In this document: positions 3,518-57,828 of the stretch, piece by piece
Layout of the letters: each line of letters opens with the position of its first letter
Position numbering within the stretch: position 1 is the stretch's first letter
IMG/VR virus record: IMGVR_UViG_3300042261_001312
Span: 1-64,000 of that record
DNA: 64,000 bases
Direction: 5' to 3' (one strand)
The notes under the pieces: generated by a model
The model's input: the letters and a program-made list of their open reading frames with translations, nothing else
The model's database searches: none
Told to the model about the DNA's origin: nothing
Position numbers and translations under genes: made by a program

Positions 3518-4388
3518 TTAATTAAGGGAGTGGAGCATATATTCCAAGACTGTGGAATCGGTCATCATCCGCTTTTCGGGGATTGCAATATTGCGATTGT
3601 CATCGAAGATGTACTGATTTACTGCATTGTAAATGAGCCAGTCATTGATCACTCCGTTGTAGCCTAAATTCGGCTTGTCGGCTTCTTCCCTGATCTTCAG
3701 CATAATTGCGTTGATCGTATTGAATTTGGCGTTATCGACTGCCACGATGCCTGATGCCTTCAGAACTTCCTCAACTCTGTTGGTTGGGTTCATTGGGATT
3801 GACTTTGCCAATGCATTGAAACGACCAGTGATTTTGTCGATGACCAATTCTGCATTGTTGACAAAGAACACCAACATTTGGGTAAGGTCAGCCAAGGACT
3901 TTTTGATGTTGATGGTATGTTTGCCACCAATGGTAAGATTGAATTCCTTCATTTCCTTTACGGGAATGGTAAGACCATTAGTACAGACAAGGCGGAAATA
4001 ACCAAACATGATGCGATAGTTGGTCTTGCCATTGTAGGAGTGCTGAACGTTCAACTTCGGGAACACAACGTCATTTGTGCCTTCAATTGAGTAGGAATAC
4101 CTTTTGTCGGTAATCGTGTAGGATGCGTAGAAACGAACGTGTTTAACGTGCGTGTAAGTGGCTTTGAACTCAATCTCTTGGCTCTCAAGGATTGCTTCAA
4201 TGTTTGGGAAAATCTCTGCATTGGGAACTAACGCATACACGTTGGAGCAGTAGTTGAGTTTCATCTCACCACGTGGAGTTTGACCTACGACGATCTTTGC
4301 GTACTCGCTGTTGGTCAGATAATTCGACAGGGAAAAGAATGTCATTCAATCCGCAAGTTGTTGCACCTTCTTTAATTCTCTTTGCCAT
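3518..4388 (-). CDS. DUF932/DUF945-family protein, apparently frameshifted near 4315
   Basis: HSYNG...FRLVCTNG family motif; the start with good context (4388, behind promoter 4425) reads MAKRIKEGATTCGLNDILFPVELSD and is out of frame with the body NSEYAKIVVG. Confidence 0.7.
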
Positions 4389-5287: not shown

Positions 5288-5359
5288 TAGTCGGAGCAGG
5301 ACTCGAACCTGCATACATAGCCACGTTCGCCATGCGCTAACCAATTACTATATCCGACT
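5288..5359 (-). ncRNA. tRNA-like RNA with non-canonical anticodon loop GAACGTG
   Basis: Acceptor AGTCGGA/TCCGACT, T-arm GCAGG-TTCGAGT-CCTGC; no U33. Confidence 0.6.
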
Positions 5360-5428
5360 AAGAGTCCGTGCTTTCCGAACTGTCAAATGCTTCATAACAC
5401 TTAGGCATTTTAGCATTAACTAACCACG

Positions 5429-5604
5429 TAGTCAGAACAGGACTCGAACCTGTAAGTCACATCTATTCCTACTTTGCTCCCAAGTACCTATCATATGTAA
5501 TTAGTATTAAACCATCTATCTTACATAATCAATATCGAAGCATTTGGTTTTTTATTACTGCCACTCACTCGTAGAGTGTGCGTCTGCCATTCCGCCATCC
5601 GACT
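5429..5604 (-). ncRNA. tRNA-like RNA with about 100 nt insertion between D and T arms
   Basis: Acceptor AGTCGGA/TCTGACT, Leu/Ser-type D arm GGCGGAATGGCAGACGC, T-arm ACAGG-TTCGAGT-CCTGT. Confidence 0.6.
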
Positions 5605-5669
5605 GTGTTCTACTTTTGATTTTTAATTTAGTAATCGCAGAATCAAAAAGTAGTAAAATAACTGCGCTG

Positions 5670-38808: not shown

Positions 38809-38837
38809 AATTATAATTTTCCAGTATGTCAATGAAC

Positions 38838-38872
38838 AAAAAAACCCGAAACTTTTTTGGTTTCGGGTTTTG
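38838..38872 (-). terminator. Attenuator terminator A
   Basis: AAAACCCGAAAC-caaaaaa-GTTTCGGGTTTT plus U-run. Confidence 0.85.
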
Positions 38873-38894
38873 TTTTTTTAAGCAACTTCACAGT

Positions 38895-39014
38895 TTAACT
38901 TTTATGAAAACCAAAACCCGTACCTTTAATATTTCTGCCAAAACAGAATATACCATTTCCATTGCGACTTGATGTCGTGAATGTCGATGTTGATATGGTA
39001 CTAATTGCTTTCAT
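38895..39014 (-). CDS. Leader peptide A: MKAISTISTSTFTTSSRNGNGIFCFGRNIKGTGFGFHKS
   Basis: 120-nt frame; 33 of 39 residues are I/S/T/F/R/N/G/C, the amino acids of the downstream tRNAs. Confidence 0.85.
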   Translation of the reverse strand: MKAISTISTSTFTTSSRNGNGIFCFGRNIKGTGFGFHKS

Positions 39015-39045
39015 AATTCTAATATTTTATTCGTTTTTATCTAAA

Positions 39046-39072
39046 TACGTTGCAAAGATATAAAATGTTACA
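39046..39072 (-). promoter_or_regulatory. Composite promoter of tRNA cluster A
   Basis: TGTAAC-N17-CGTA with nested TATCTTTG and overlapping GTATTTA. Confidence 0.8.
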
Positions 39073-39123
39073 ATATCTGCAAACTATTTTTAACTTTTTT
39101 TAAAAAATATTTTTAATTATTTC

Positions 39124-45579: not shown

Positions 45580-46239
45580 TCAATTTTTATTTAAAATTTC
45601 AACTACTTTAGTTATGCAATTTATGACATTTTCTTTAACTTCTTTGGCAGTAAATCGAACAACAATCCATCCATTATCAATACTGAATTTATCTCTACGC
45701 TCGTCAATTTTTATTACCCGTTCTTGCTTATGTGTTCCACCATCGATTTCAATATCAATTTTATGTTCTGGAAATGCAAAATCATATGAATAAATGCCGT
45801 TTCGATAATTATACATCCATCCAGTAATATTGGCAGAAATCAAGGCGTTTTCAAATATTTTTTCAGGATAACTCATTTTACTTGAGTGGTTAATGACATA
45901 AGGGACTCTATCTGGATGTTCATTTAAATATTTTAACATTCCATCACTTATTCTCTTTTTGTCTTCATCAGACCATTTAAAATTTTTATTTTGATTAGAC
46001 TTGGTGACTTTTTCTAAATTATTGTTGTAATTTGGGTTTTGTTTGCAATGGGGTATATGTCCACCTAATTTAAAAGCATTGTCAAATTCAATACCACAAT
46101 GTTGACACGTAGTTTTTGGTAATTTATTTTTTCTTGAACTTGATTTTAAAGGTCTAATGTAATTTGAATGTATACGGCAATGTGCAATATATGATTGACG
46201 TTTTTCAAATTCTTTATTACATTTATCGCAATTGTACAT
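45580..46239 (-). mobile_element. Putative homing endonuclease (C2H2 fingers plus DUF559/Vsr-like domain)
   Basis: SYPEK, YSYDFA, IDIEIDGGTH, D..RD. Confidence 0.75.
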
Positions 46240-46331
46240 ATTTATTTGATTTTATCATAAATACGTGGCAAAATAAAAAAGCATCGCACTCATTCAATTT
46301 TTTTGGAATAGGTGTGATGCTTAACATTTTG

Positions 46332-46404
46332 TGTACCCGGGCAGATTCGAACTGCCAGTCTCGCATATTAAAAGTATGGGGTTTTACCATTAAACTACGG
46401 GTAC
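46332..46404 (-). tRNA. tRNA-Lys(TTT)
   Basis: CCATA-CTTTTAA-TATGC. Confidence 0.88.
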
Positions 46405-46435
46405 ATCAATAAATATCACCATTTTTTGGTAACAG

Positions 46436-46520
46436 TGAGAGTAGAGGGATTCGAACCCCCTGAGTATCAAAGTCTTGGTTTTACAGACCAGTGCCACTCC
46501 GCCATCGTGACCGTACTCTC
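46436..46520 (-). tRNA. tRNA-Tyr(GTA)
   Basis: CTGGT-CTGTAAA-ACCAA; long variable arm. Confidence 0.88.
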
Positions 46521-46530
46521 AAATAAATTG

Positions 46531-46604
46531 TGCATCCAGAGGGATTCGAACCCTCGACTCTCGCATTAAAGGTGCGATACTCTAGCCAACTGAGTTACGG
46601 ATGC
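46531..46604 (-). tRNA. tRNA-Lys(TTT) with C33
   Basis: TCGCA-CCTTTAA-TGCGA. Confidence 0.82.
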
Positions 46605-46612
46605 ATACAAAA

Positions 46613-46644
46613 TAAAAAAACCCGAATCTTTCGAATCGGGTTTT
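46613..46644 (-). terminator. Attenuator terminator B
   Basis: AAAACCCGATTC-GAAA-GATTCGGG plus U-run. Confidence 0.85.
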
Positions 46645-46672
46645 ATATTGCTTAGTTAGTTATGTATTTTGT

Positions 46673-46762
46673 TTACATACTATTTTGGCAAACCAATCCC
46701 GATTCCATAAGATGTTTCTTATAAGATTTATAACCGTAATATGATTTACCAAATGTTTTCAT
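46673..46762 (-). CDS. Leader peptide B: MKTFGKSYYGYKSYKKHLMESGLVCQNSM
   Basis: 8 of codons 6-16 are Lys/Tyr; downstream tRNAs are Lys, Tyr, Lys. Confidence 0.85.
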   Translation of the reverse strand: MKTFGKSYYGYKSYKKHLMESGLVCQNSM

Positions 46763-46784
46763 CGCTTTAATTATTAAATTTTTA

Positions 46785-46827
46785 CAAAGATACACATAAA
46801 TACGTAACTTCCAAATAAAAAGTTACA
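46785..46827 (-). promoter_or_regulatory. Composite promoter of tRNA cluster B
   Basis: TGTAAC-N17-CGTA (46801-46827), GTATTTAT and TATCTTTG (46785-46792). Confidence 0.8.
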
Positions 46828-46843
46828 AAAATTGAAATTATTT

Positions 46844-47632
46844 TTATTCAACCAATCTTATTGTCCAGAAGTCAGATGCTAAGTTGTTGGTAATGTAGCC
46901 ATAAGGTAAATAAAAATATCCATTTAATCCCCACTTAGTTCCCCAACTATTTCTAATAATAAACGATTCTTTTGAATCATCGTATCCGACAGCCATGATT
47001 GCATGACCGCCTTGAGGTCGTTCATTATTCCTTGGCATTTCAGCAATACCTGTGCGTGCAACTTTTGGTGACATGAATGATTCGTATATCATAAATCCAA
47101 ATACAACGGGATATCCTTCTGCAAGACATTGCTTAACATCACGTACCGTTTTATTAACACTATAATATGACAATACTTGGTTATTTAATGCAGCGTCATA
47201 ACATTCTTGTGGTGGTTTCTGACTAAATTTGCTTGGTATGTATTCCCACATCGTTTCTGGACAAACTCCATCTTTAACCAATGTTTTCATACCGTCCCTA
47301 ATTATTGCACCAGCATCTTCATAAATTGTTCCTTCCATTGCCCTTTCATTATAATAAACAAAAAGTCTTGATGGAATGAAGTTTTCCTTACCTTGTTTCA
47401 TTTCCTCAAACTGATAAGCAGCATTTAATGCATTCGCTGTACAACTACCAAGTTCACCTTGATCGTATACTGGTGGACATTTTGGACGTAAATCAATTAA
47501 TGGTGGTAAGTCAATAGGTGCACTAACCTTATACTTGTAATCTCTGTCGTCAATAGGGTCAGGTTTCCATCCTAATTTTCTTGGTATTGGCTTTTTCTTA
47601 AAAAGACCTAAAATAAATTTAAATAGTTTCAT
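46844..47632 (-). CDS. C1-family (papain-like) cysteine peptidase
   Basis: DQGELGSCTAN, GGHAI, IRNSWG..WG..GY. Confidence 0.92.
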   Translation of the reverse strand: MKLFKFILGLFKKKPIPRKLGWKPDPIDDRDYKYKVSAPIDLPPLIDLRPKCPPVYDQGELGSCTANALNAAYQFEEMKQGKENFIPSRLFVYYNERAMEGTIYEDAGAIIRDGMKTLVKDGVCPETMWEYIPSKFSQKPPQECYDAALNNQVLSYYSVNKTVRDVKQCLAEGYPVVFGFMIYESFMSPKVARTGIAEMPRNNERPQGGHAIMAVGYDDSKESFIIRNSWGTKWGLNGYFYLPYGYITNNLASDFWTIRLVE

Positions 47633-47706
47633 AATATTTCGTTTTATCATAAATACTGTGAAACCACTCAAATCAAAAAAAATGGCTGTAAAATACAGCC
47701 ATTTAA

Positions 47707-48798
47707 TTATGCAATATATTCGTATCCATCTTTGAATGGTTTACTATATACTGGTCTTATTTCTTTCCAAATTATTTCATCATATGGTTTTTTGTCATAT
47801 AATTTGAATAATATGGAACGATATTTTGATTTTATTGCTTCCATTGCAAATTTTTTACGTTCAACGATGTCATTGACATGATAAATTCTTATAAAATCTA
47901 TCAAAGCAAGTCTTTCAATTTCATTATATTCAATTTGCAAGTGCTTGATTGTTCTTTTCAACCAGTCGTAAAATTCGTCAGGTACTCTATCGAGTAATAT
48001 GTTGAAATCATAGTTATTTTTCAAGTGTTCCCATACAGTTAAGTTTGAAACATTTGTTAAAATACCGTGCAACCTAACATATTCGCTGAATTTAACCTTA
48101 ACTCTCATACCACTTGAAAACTTAACAACAAAACCTTCCATGTTATCTTCTTCAAGTCTTTTCAATTCCATCAAATTTTTGACATTATTCATGTCATATC
48201 TATTTACAATTGTAAAGTACTTGTGATAATTAACAGCCATGTCTCTGTATGTTAATTCCAAACCAGTTTTAGTGTCAATTACTGTAAGCAGTATCAAGTC
48301 ACGCATGTCGCCATAGTTGACAACGATTCTGTTTTCAGGATATATGACTTCAAAAACATATGTGAATAACTTATTTAATTTATCAAAAACATTCGTTTTT
48401 GATATTAGCATTTTTGTTGCTTCAGTCATTTGTTCAGAAATAAATGATCCTCTAGATGCAACAATCCATTTATTAACTGCTTCGTAATGAAACAATAAAA
48501 TCAACGAACCATCCATCTTTTCAAAAACTTCAAAGTCTTGCGACATATCAATTTCTGATGGATCATGTTCTTCATAATTTTTGAACTTAACCATTGGTCT
48601 TGCCAATATGTTACCTTCAGCATCAACAACCATTCCACGACATGAAAGCGTATATTCATCCCAAAATTTCTGTGATTGAGTTTTTGGTGAATAGTTTAAT
48701 ATCCAAATGTCATATTCTGGATGCTTATTTGATACAATAAGATTATTTTCAATGTATTCATTTAATACATTCCAATCAATTTTCTTCAATAATTCCAT
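47707..48798 (-). CDS. T4 Rnl1-type RNA ligase
   Basis: CRG, KFKN, EKMDGSL, SRGSF, EGFVV, RVKVK. Confidence 0.88.
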   Translation of the reverse strand: MELLKKIDWNVLNEYIENNLIVSNKHPEYDIWILNYSPKTQSQKFWDEYTLSCRGMVVDAEGNILARPMVKFKNYEEHDPSEIDMSQDFEVFEKMDGSLILLFHYEAVNKWIVASRGSFISEQMTEATKMLISKTNVFDKLNKLFTYVFEVIYPENRIVVNYGDMRDLILLTVIDTKTGLELTYRDMAVNYHKYFTIVNRYDMNNVKNLMELKRLEEDNMEGFVVKFSSGMRVKVKFSEYVRLHGILTNVSNLTVWEHLKNNYDFNILLDRVPDEFYDWLKRTIKHLQIEYNEIERLALIDFIRIYHVNDIVERKKFAMEAIKSKYRSILFKLYDKKPYDEIIWKEIRPVYSKPFKDGYEYIA

Positions 48799-57200: not shown

Positions 57201-57203
57201 ATA

Positions 57204-57256
57204 ATTTATAGGCGAATTAACCGATATTATACATTTATAGGCGAATTAACCGATAT
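57204..57256. repeat. 24-bp perfect direct repeat at the HNH gene 3' end
   Basis: atttataggcgaattaaccgatat at 57204 and 57233. Confidence 0.85.
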
Positions 57257-57761
57257 AATTCTTATATTTCCTTAAATATATATTTCTTTTAGTTTCTTTT
57301 ATATTATTAATACCACCTTTATTTGTAATTTGTTGTGAATGACAATTAGGACAAATTAATCTAAGATTATCTGGCATACAATTATCTGAATTTCCATCAA
57401 TATGGTCAACTTCTAATGTTAACGGCTTGTCATTCCATTCATTTCCACATCCACATTCAACACAATTTTCGCCATGTAATTTAATCAATATTTTTCGTAA
57501 TGTGACATTCTGATATACTTTACCAGCATAAAACTTAGTCAATGTCTTATTTTCGTATTGAAAATTATTATAACATTTTATGTCACAAAATCTATTAATA
57601 TTTTTCTCTAAAATATTTCCACAATACAAACAATTTTTTATTTCTTTGTTTTTTTTCGGATAAATTTTGTTATTATATTTAGTCGCACAACTTTTATTAC
57701 AAAATTTATTATTTTGATTATTTAAATCATTACCACATTCTAAGCATTTTTTCGAATTCAT
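57246..57761 (-). mobile_element. HNH homing endonuclease
   Basis: LEVDHIDGNSDN...NLRLICPNCHSQ. Confidence 0.88.
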
Positions 57762-57828
57762 GATTATTAATTTTTTTATAAATACTCGATAATTCGAAAT
57801 ATGCAAACATTCTGAAGAAAAAATATTG

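Follow-up and report, generated by a model that had tools for sequence, protein, structure and literature searches.

How, and under which conditions, are the transfer RNA (tRNA) genes of a large phage transcribed? The question is raised by the DNA analysed here (the window), a stretch of 64,000 nucleotides (nt) comprising positions 1 to 64,000 of IMG/VR virus record IMGVR_UViG_3300042261_001312, in which the G+C content is 31.4% and each of the 33 tRNA genes lies on the minus strand. Its source contig (IMG/VR 3300042261_001312) is 327,676 bp long and belongs to a huge phage. We concentrated on a locus, here called unit B, that immediately precedes an operon of tRNA-Lys, tRNA-Tyr and tRNA-Lys and for which a preliminary description had proposed a Lys/Tyr leader attenuator. 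We conclude with good confidence that unit B is a ribosome-mediated leader-peptide transcription attenuator that gates this operon with trp-like polarity. Its elements, in which x:y denotes the helix between regions x and y and ORF an open reading frame, are the following.

46828..46614, minus strand: the whole of unit B (upstream element, promoter candidate, leader ORF and terminator)
46797..46828, minus strand: conserved upstream element TTGTAAC-N17-CGTATTTA, a sequence pattern
46785..46815, minus strand: candidate promoter of Bacteroidota type, read from the sequence (TTTG at 46815..46812, 19 nt, TATCTTTG at 46792..46785)
46673..46762, minus strand: leader ORF of 29 codons plus TAA (ATG at 46762, TAA at 46675..46673), peptide MKTFGKSYYGYKSYKKHLMESGLVCQNSM
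46732..46753, minus strand: region 1, the anti-antiterminator strand (codons 4-10), paired with region 2 in the minimum free energy (MFE) fold of the ribosome-free RNA
46715..46747, minus strand: sensing block, codons 6-16, translated K6-S-Y-Y-G-Y-K-S-Y-K-K16
46705..46724, minus strand: apical hairpin of the 1:2 structure, CUUAUAAG-N4-CUUAUGG, over the S-Y-K-K codons, from the fold
46684..46705, minus strand: region 2, with the core GAATCGGG at 46705..46698, partner of region 1 or of region 3 (antiterminator)
46633..46644, minus strand: region 3, an A-tract plus CCCGATTC (46640..46633), the 5' arm of the terminator, from sequence and fold
46614..46628, minus strand: region 4, GATTCGGG (46628..46621) plus the U-tract T7 (46620..46614), from sequence and fold
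46604..46530, minus strand: tRNA-Lys(UUU), C33 variant, called by ARAGORN and Rfam
46520..46435, minus strand: tRNA-Tyr(GUA), from the tRNA calls
46404..46331, minus strand: tRNA-Lys(UUU), canonical copy, from the tRNA calls

When the minus strand was re-read, the coordinates and sequences previously given proved exact, as did the complementarity claimed between GAATCGGG and the terminator 5' arm (46705..46698 with 46640..46633): the core of region 2 is the exact complement of CCCGATTC. On the two strands of the window together, 0.61 copies of the core 8-mer would be expected and three are present, two of which form this inverted pair, 58 nt apart; by our own estimate from 8-mer counts, about 5e-4 such pairs would be expected by chance. 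Regions 3 and 4 together form an intrinsic terminator (46644..46614) with a GAAA loop and one T.T mismatch, which folded alone has a free energy of -14.2 kcal/mol (z = -3.8). A simple terminator scan did not call this hairpin, because of the mismatch in its stem. Only 9 nt separate the U-tract from the first tRNA, which leaves no room for a promoter, so that the first tRNA would be transcribed only through the terminator; inspection of the interval from ORF to tRNA for TAnnTTTG, the Bacteroidota -7 motif, revealed none. Within the leader ORF, Lys or Tyr occupies 8 of the 11 positions of the sensing block (codons AAA four times, AAG once, TAT three times, TAC once), and these two residues make up 9 of the 17 encoded 5' of region 2, compared with a background of 15.8% (binomial P = 4.5e-4).

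Two related contigs bearing the leader, the terminator and Lys/Tyr tRNAs were found first, through the protease gene that lies 5' of unit B. A scan of IMG/VR using a leader-based pattern returned 21 distinct units, and a scan of metagenomes using a pattern that left region 2 and the terminator 5' arm unconstrained returned 81 distinct matches, of which about 72 are true leaders. Taken together, about 90 distinct homologous leaders on large phage contigs share the layout of unit B and keep the ORF, the terminator and the complement that would act as antiterminator, which bears out the proposed Lys/Tyr attenuator ahead of tRNA-Lys/Tyr/Lys. The terminator is present in 21/21 units of the IMG/VR set and is followed by Lys/Tyr tRNAs in all but one (L003), which reaches the contig end. 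Among the metagenome matches, Lys and Tyr both occur among the first tRNAs of 49, Lys alone in 14 and Lys with one other isotype in 6; in 11 the contig is truncated. The 21 IMG/VR and the ~72 metagenome homologues retain the start codon ATG and a frame that stays open across the sensing block; indels within the block are multiples of three, and the peptide motif Y-Y-x-x-(K)-K-S-Y-K is conserved throughout the family. Beyond the K/Y block the peptide is not conserved and is read in different frames; the nucleotides of region 2 (GGAATCGGGA) are kept and are translated as GIG in 39 cases, RIG in 27, ESG in 4 (including the window) and GFG in 1. Constraint therefore acts on the peptide within the sensing block and on the RNA beyond it, a pattern to be expected of an attenuator rather than of a functional small protein.

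The alternative pairings themselves are conserved. Region 2 is a perfect 8-bp complement of the terminator 5' arm in 63/71 units, region 2 having been left unconstrained in the search, whereas the terminator's own 3' arm, region 4, is a perfect complement in 0/71; this difference would bias the RNA toward the antiterminator whenever region 2 is free. Region 1 (46753..46732), which the preliminary description overlooked, holds region 2 in a covarying hairpin. The 1:2 hairpin is predicted in the nascent RNA of 21/21 IMG/VR homologues, from differing sequences, and when the 1:2 structure was imposed on the alignment 84.2% of the cells were paired, compared with 41-48% when the partner was slid by 1-3 columns. 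Both sides had changed at 11 pairs (25 cells), a degree of covariation reached by 0/500 shuffles. The apical hairpin reads TCTTATAAG...CTTATAGGA in most homologues, with one compensatory G-C to A-U pair in four sequences. RNAalifold applied to the full-length alignment returned the 2:3 antiterminator helix as the consensus, and on MAFFT alignments it missed the 1:2 helix, since three sequences are put out of register by a 1-nt indel; the 1:2 helix was assessed instead from single-sequence folds and the explicit structure. For the 2:3 helix, a compensatory pair is found in homologue L002 (ATTCGGG with CCCGAAT).

These observations bear on the possibility that the ORF encodes a micro-protein in its own right, expressed from a promoter of its own and ended by an ordinary terminator. 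In that case constitutive leaky read-through or upstream transcripts would supply the tRNAs, and the leader would sense nothing. Conservation of the peptide over ~90 homologues and the order promoter, ORF, terminator also fit a plain small gene, and in some homologues an additional 120-250 nt, in which a promoter could lie, separates the terminator from the first tRNA. However, such a gene would not account for a peptide that loses conservation and changes frame just where the RNA is kept, for a region 2 that surpasses the terminator's 3' arm as complement of the 5' arm, or for a covarying 1:2 helix, and the window itself has only the 9-nt gap between U-tract and tRNA. The leader peptides match no Pfam or PHROG family, and four unrelated leaders each mirror their own tRNA set (see below). 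We regard this explanation as unlikely.

The leader-peptide attenuator would also explain a pattern that extends beyond unit B. Four leader units were found in this phage, A, B and C within the window and D just past its end, and the sister units have the following elements.

38809..39073, minus strand: unit A, with the same upstream element and a 39-codon leader ORF (39014..38895), peptide MKAISTISTSTFTTSSRNGNGIFCFGRNIKGTGFGFHKS
38871..38838, minus strand: terminator of unit A, with boxA-like GTTCATTGACA at 38837..38827
58780..59027, minus strand: unit C, with the same upstream element and a 28-codon leader ORF (58969..58883), peptide MKKVLDILMVALEAVLLWDAEDMLYTVG
58852..58816, minus strand: terminator of unit C, with boxA-like GTTCTTTGAAA at 58806..58796
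contig L306, beyond the window end, minus strand: unit D, with leader MKNLVNIVPQPQQHPNNVEWGNYC and region 2 GAATGGGG facing CCCCATTC
L306 ~5595-5606, minus strand: boxA-like motif of unit D, by sequence likeness

The leader of unit A is rich in T/S/I/N/F/C/G/R and precedes tRNAs for Cys, Ile, Ser, Phe, Gly, Ile, Asn, Thr, Arg (three), Gly and Ser; that of unit C is rich in D/E/V/L/A/W and precedes tRNAs for Asp, Glu, Val, Leu (four), Ala and Trp; and that of unit D contains P/Q/H and precedes tRNAs for Pro (two), His and Gln (three). Residues of the own set number 33/38 in unit A (P = 9e-9), 19/27 in unit C (P = 6e-5) and, for type D, 9/23 in the homologue L047 (P = 4e-5). Every comparison of a leader with the amino-acid set of another unit fell at or below background. 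In a leader-by-operon matrix of 83 distinct leaders from many contigs, the diagonal values were 0.43-0.53 and the off-diagonal values 0.00-0.26. The idea that the leader mirrors its tRNAs, first put forward for unit B, is upheld by the three sister units of the same phage. Regions 2 and 3 have sequences specific to each family that are nevertheless complementary: AGTCGGGT/ACCCGACT in unit C, TGGTCGAGA/TCTCGACCA in L177, GTGTCGGG/CCCGACAC in the type-A unit of L163 and GAACGGGG/CCCTGTTC in the type-D unit of L047. In unit C, region 2 (GTCGGGT) overlaps the stop codon, so that a terminating ribosome would mask the antiterminator, which is the classical trp geometry.

The match between leaders and tRNAs also addresses whether the RNA switch is real but set by a trans-acting factor, either a protein or a tRNA bound in T-box fashion, with the ORF incidental. 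Conserved alternative helices do not by themselves require translation, and the element TTGTAAC-N17-CGTATTTA suggests dedicated regulation. The composition of the leaders nevertheless matches the tRNA isotypes in four families, which only decoding explains; moreover, the ATG is kept, as is the frame across the sensing block, in which indels are multiples of three; the block ends at the very point from which a stalled ribosome would occlude region 2 (see below); and neither a T-box nor any other Rfam leader matches the locus. A trans-acting setting of the switch is thus quite unlikely. For decoding of the leaders, we think it fairly likely that in a clade of phages of 200-365 kb the whole tRNA complement stands under four leader-peptide attenuators, each sampling the codons of its own operon: A = T/S/I/N/F/C/G/R, B = K/Y, C = D/E/V/L/A/W and D = P/Q/H.

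RNA folding was used to model how translation could set the switch in unit B. In the predicted fold of the free leader RNA (-41.3 kcal/mol, z = -5.4, a stability that none of the shuffles attained) the 1:2 and 3:4 helices both form, and codons 4-10 (46753..46732) pair with GGAAUCGGG and its 3' flank (46705..46684). This 1:2 helix (fold z = -4.8) overlaps the regulatory codons. Masking a ribosome footprint at codon 6, 9 or 12 changed the MFE structure to the 2:3 antiterminator, an 8-bp perfect duplex of -14.4 kcal/mol whose stability is about that of the terminator hairpin with its T.T mismatch (-13.7). Co-transcriptional folding was approximated by ending the RNA 5' of region 4 and allowing pairing only 3' of the ribosome. 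In this model region 2 captures region 3 at every A-site position from codon 2 to codon 16, the 2:3 pairing weakens at codons 17-19, and none is left from codon 20. The last Lys is codon 16; the sensing block thus stops just where a stalled ribosome would start to occlude region 2. It had been cautioned that the antiterminator lies close behind the sensing block, which is correct, and that the stall positions favouring read-through were not obvious; the second part of this caveat is settled in the model by the region 1 hairpin together with a block that ends at the point of occlusion.

According to the proposed mechanism, transcription would start at the Bacteroidota-type promoter and a ribosome would translate the 29-codon ORF. 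If Lys and Tyr codons are decoded fast, the ribosome would be over and past region 2 while the polymerase makes regions 3 and 4; with region 2 covered or passed, the 3:4 terminator would form and transcription would stop 9 nt short of the first tRNA. A shortage of charged tRNA-Lys or tRNA-Tyr would stall the ribosome at codons 6-16, where it would melt region 1 while region 2 stays exposed. The exposed region 2 would then capture region 3, because it is a perfect complement whereas region 4 is imperfect, and the polymerase would continue into the tRNA genes. The newly made tRNA-Lys and tRNA-Tyr would relieve the stall, closing a negative-feedback loop on tRNA supply. On a ribosome-free leader the 1:2 hairpin would probably form first and termination would be the default, although this step is less certain.

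What is observed at the locus are the elements, their alternative pairings, the conservation and covariation of these, and a leader composition that matches the downstream tRNAs. Several points weigh against the attenuator as we propose it. We infer the promoter and start site, translation of the ORF, how efficiently the terminator works, which way the switch acts and how it responds to tRNA supply, and coupling of ribosome and polymerase in the likely Bacteroidota host is an assumption of the model. Regions 2 and 3 are almost invariant within family B, and direct 2:3 covariation consequently comes mainly from L002 and the sister families. One type-C homologue (L099, 1318-1405) has ATA in place of ATG, right after an in-frame TAA, and represents either a non-canonical start or a decaying attenuator. 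In full-length MFE folds with a masked ribosome, units A and C stayed in the terminator throughout, so the model depends on co-transcriptional kinetics; folding the completed RNA to equilibrium was judged to be the wrong model and was replaced by folding of RNA truncated before region 4. When region 4 and the ribosome are both omitted, however, the MFE structure of unit B already favours 2:3, which makes the untranslated default state ambiguous. Finally, the stop codon of unit B lies 7 codons past region 2, too far on for a terminating ribosome to cover it physically, and blocking would rely on a ribosome between regions 2 and 3 and on timing.

The last two points would suit a ribosome-dependent switch of the opposite polarity, in which a stall causes termination and smooth translation causes read-through. 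Yet a ribosome at codons 6-16 would cover region 1 and spare region 2, and one further along would cover region 2; the type-C region 2 lies on the stop codon, where the terminating ribosome would mask it as in trp; and making extra tRNA when decoding is already easy lacks an obvious logic. We consider this polarity very unlikely. A further weakness of the attenuator interpretation is that the excess of Lys and Tyr over the whole unit-B peptide is modest (9/28, P = 0.025) in an AT-rich genome where both residues are generally common. Since short K/Y-rich ORFs easily arise at 31% G+C, this would agree with a chance juxtaposition of a spurious AT-rich ORF and the terminator of the upstream protease gene. 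Such a juxtaposition would not produce a conserved, covarying layout in ~90 homologues, always before Lys/Tyr tRNAs, nor place the upstream element between the protease gene and the ORF, nor be expected to yield the 8-mer pair; the comparative data effectively refute it, and it retains next to no probability.

The transcription signals of the leader-peptide attenuator begin with the element TTGTAAC-N17-CGTATTTA, which occurs three times in the window against 0.01 expected, each time 5' of a leader unit; the copy of unit B sits between the protease gene and the leader ORF. In IMG/VR it precedes tRNA operons in many phage contigs, and it is probably a promoter or a regulatory site specific to tRNA-operon leader units. 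The candidate promoter TTTG-N19-TATCTTTG is also found in homologues, and transcription of unit B is predicted to start near 46780, ~18 nt 5' of the ATG. The Bacteroidota promoter consensus at -33/-7 is TTTG/TANNTTTG, and the phylum has no Shine-Dalgarno sequences (PMC6847099); the fit to this consensus and the lack of Shine-Dalgarno sequences point to a member of the Bacteroidota as the host. In a different group of phages (L056, L057, L058, L059, L072 and L103), TTGTAAC-N-CGTATTTA lies ~100 nt 5' of a second promoter with TAnnTTTG, followed by a boxA-like motif and tRNA genes and without a leader ORF or terminator; the element is therefore tied to tRNA transcription more widely than the attenuators are.

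Directly 3' of the U-tract, units A, C and D and most homologues carry a boxA-like motif, GTTCTTTGA(A/C)A or a near variant; none was found in unit B, where 9 nt separate U-tract and tRNA. The boxA sequences of B. subtilis and E. coli are AUGAUCUUUGAAA and UGCUCUUUAACA (PMC13753749). In units A and C the motif abuts the U-tract, so that as an RNA signal it would be made only by read-through, and its sequence suggests Nus-factor antitermination on long untranslated tRNA transcripts.

The sequence between terminator and first tRNA has features of its own in several homologues. A subgroup of B-type units (L191, L193, L194, L207, L208 and L210) contains arrays of short repeats, GCATAAAAACGCATA and (C/T)ATGAAAAACG, over 120-200 nt of this gap, which may be binding sites or extra promoters. 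Conserved RNAs of ~250 nt lie between the terminator or boxA and the first tRNA in L306 (~5350-5600, minus strand) and L047 (~4040-4300), and spacer RNAs were also seen in L003 (5600-5760), L048 (2560-2790) and L202. The spacer RNA before tRNA-Pro begins with GAAGAGG and ends with T-arm-like GTGGGTTAAAGTCCCAC plus CCTCTTCA, which makes it a possible tRNA-like RNA carrying a large insertion; the spacer RNAs of Lys/Tyr operons have CGTGAGCAGnGGAAGG..CTGACAGGCAC in common. Rfam gave no identity for the ~250-nt spacer RNAs of L003, L047 and L048.

The neighbourhood of the Lys/Tyr operon includes four further features.

48798..47707, minus strand: T4 Rnl1-like RNA ligase (PF09511, E = 3.8e-18), two genes 5' of the Lys/Tyr tRNA operon
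47671..46844, minus strand: papain-family protease gene 5' of unit B
46275..46322, minus strand: terminator-like hairpin plus T-run closing the three-tRNA operon (fold, -16.1 kcal/mol, z = -5.0)
46239..45580, minus strand: zinc-finger/DUF559 endonuclease-like ORF 3' of the tRNAs (ORF, Pfam)

T4 Rnl1 repairs tRNA-Lys that has been cleaved by PrrC. The first tRNA-Lys(UUU) of the operon (46530-46604) has the anticodon loop CCUUUAA, with C33 in place of the near-universal U33, and the second copy is canonical. C33 is found in 26/108 tRNA-Lys(UUU) and 2/38 tRNA-Lys(CUU) genes of these operons (e.g. L191-L290), the C33 copies of tRNA-Lys(UUU) sitting beside a canonical one. The variant may resist anticodon nucleases that cut next to position 34. 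An Rnl1-like ligase and a C33 tRNA-Lys are compatible with a role in defence, and any link to PrrC or to other tRNA-cutting defences is speculation.

Further features were noticed among the tRNA genes of the window, likewise on the minus strand. An amber-suppressor tRNA (anticodon CUA), which ARAGORN labels 'Pyl', stands at the end of the unit-A operon (33976-34047) and hints at TAG recoding in part of the phage genes. An ARAGORN 'Cys' tRNA with the unusual anticodon ACA (37790-37861) is not among the Rfam tRNA matches and may be a mis-folded or degenerate tRNA. Two tandem direct copies of TATATCGGTTAATTCGCCTATAAAT (57201-57260) lie directly 5' of tRNA-Leu(UAA) and 3' of an HNH-like ORF. Homing-endonuclease-like ORFs occur among the operon tRNAs at 45580-46239, 57246-57806, 58007-58654, 36211-36969 and 34454-35137; they have zinc-finger/DUF559 or HNH-like C-terminal motifs, the comparison with Pfam covering 45580-46239.

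Database searches placed the leader family among phages. At gathering thresholds an Rfam scan of the locus and window found only tRNAs and no leader family, the His, Leu and Phe leader families included, and the T-box covariance model had no match in either. At permissive settings Trp_leader (RF00513, 21.0 bits, threshold 41) and Thr_leader (RF00506, 19.1 bits, threshold 55) appeared, and these sub-threshold matches were rejected as terminator-driven. Megablast of the locus against GenBank phages returned nothing, and distant blastn returned only tRNA-level matches plus one 595-kb uncultured phage at the protease gene. A loose pattern for the upstream element gave mostly chance hits among the IMG/VR matches listed, while tighter and leader-based patterns worked. 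In a single pattern scan of 185,579 reference bacterial and archaeal species, just one contig carried the B leader; 362,763 bp long and assigned to a Paceibacterota metagenome-assembled genome, it is a mis-binned phage contig. The other matches (20/21) were chance ones, lacking an ORF or tRNAs. The leader family is widespread in lake-sediment, sludge and other metagenomes. A full-text literature search turned up nothing that connects phage tRNA genes with leader peptides or attenuators; its coverage was incomplete, and this is absence of evidence only.

How and when phages express their tRNA genes, and why large phages carry near-complete tRNA sets, would find a testable answer in the leader-peptide attenuator. 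The four units together split nearly all amino acids among leader-gated tRNA operons, and such channels would explain the fixed operons that group tRNAs by amino acid in these genomes. If the proposal is true, the phage gauges, channel by channel, whether the infected cell still decodes its messages, and tRNAs are supplied on demand, per codon group, being made just for the groups that run short, for example through decay of host tRNA, codon-usage mismatch or cleavage by anticodon nucleases. This would be an autoregulated, demand-driven tRNA supply, for which we found no cellular precedent. The leader, terminator and tRNA would form a cassette of ~170 nt that provides an experimental handle on tRNA depletion or cleavage. 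For annotation, these ORFs of 24-45 codons would be regulatory leaders and not hypothetical proteins.

The leader-peptide attenuators of the trp, his, leu, thr, ilvGMEDA and pheA operons follow the Yanofsky model. They share with unit B a short ORF rich in cognate codons, four RNA segments whose 1:2, 2:3 and 3:4 pairings exclude one another, an intrinsic terminator, and a stall that exposes the antiterminator. Judged by its sequence, unit B has every structural feature of this class that was examined: the ORF, the cognate codons, the terminator, the 2:3 helix and the 1:2 helix. The multivalent ilv and thr leaders are in this respect like units A and C, which likewise sample several amino acids. 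Unlike the trp-type attenuators, unit B is phage-encoded, has a Bacteroidota-type promoter and no Shine-Dalgarno sequence, and intersperses its cognate codons (K-S-Y-Y-G-Y-K-S-Y-K-K) rather than presenting a pure run.

Expression of phenylalanyl-tRNA synthetase from E. coli pheST is controlled by attenuation at the pheM leader. This too is a leader-peptide attenuator over a component of the translation apparatus that responds to the supply of charged cognate tRNA, but it is cellular, senses only one amino acid and acts on the protein gene of a synthetase, whereas here the tRNA genes themselves are controlled. T-box elements also convert tRNA status into a choice between terminator and antiterminator 5' of translation-related genes; they bind uncharged tRNA through a specifier codon and the T-box sequence without translation, in contrast to the conserved ORF of cognate codons found here. 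The rrn-type boxA (NusB/S10) resembles the motif of units A, C and D, by sequence only, and would protect long untranslated tRNA transcripts; it is a processivity signal and not a sensor, and unit B lacks it. To our knowledge, leader-peptide attenuation is known to target amino-acid biosynthesis and a few synthetase genes. The trp-type attenuators control enzymes, whereas the tRNA made here would act directly on its own sensor, feeding straight back on it. What is new here is the target, which is tRNA genes, the carrier, which is a phage, and the division of the amino acids among four channels.

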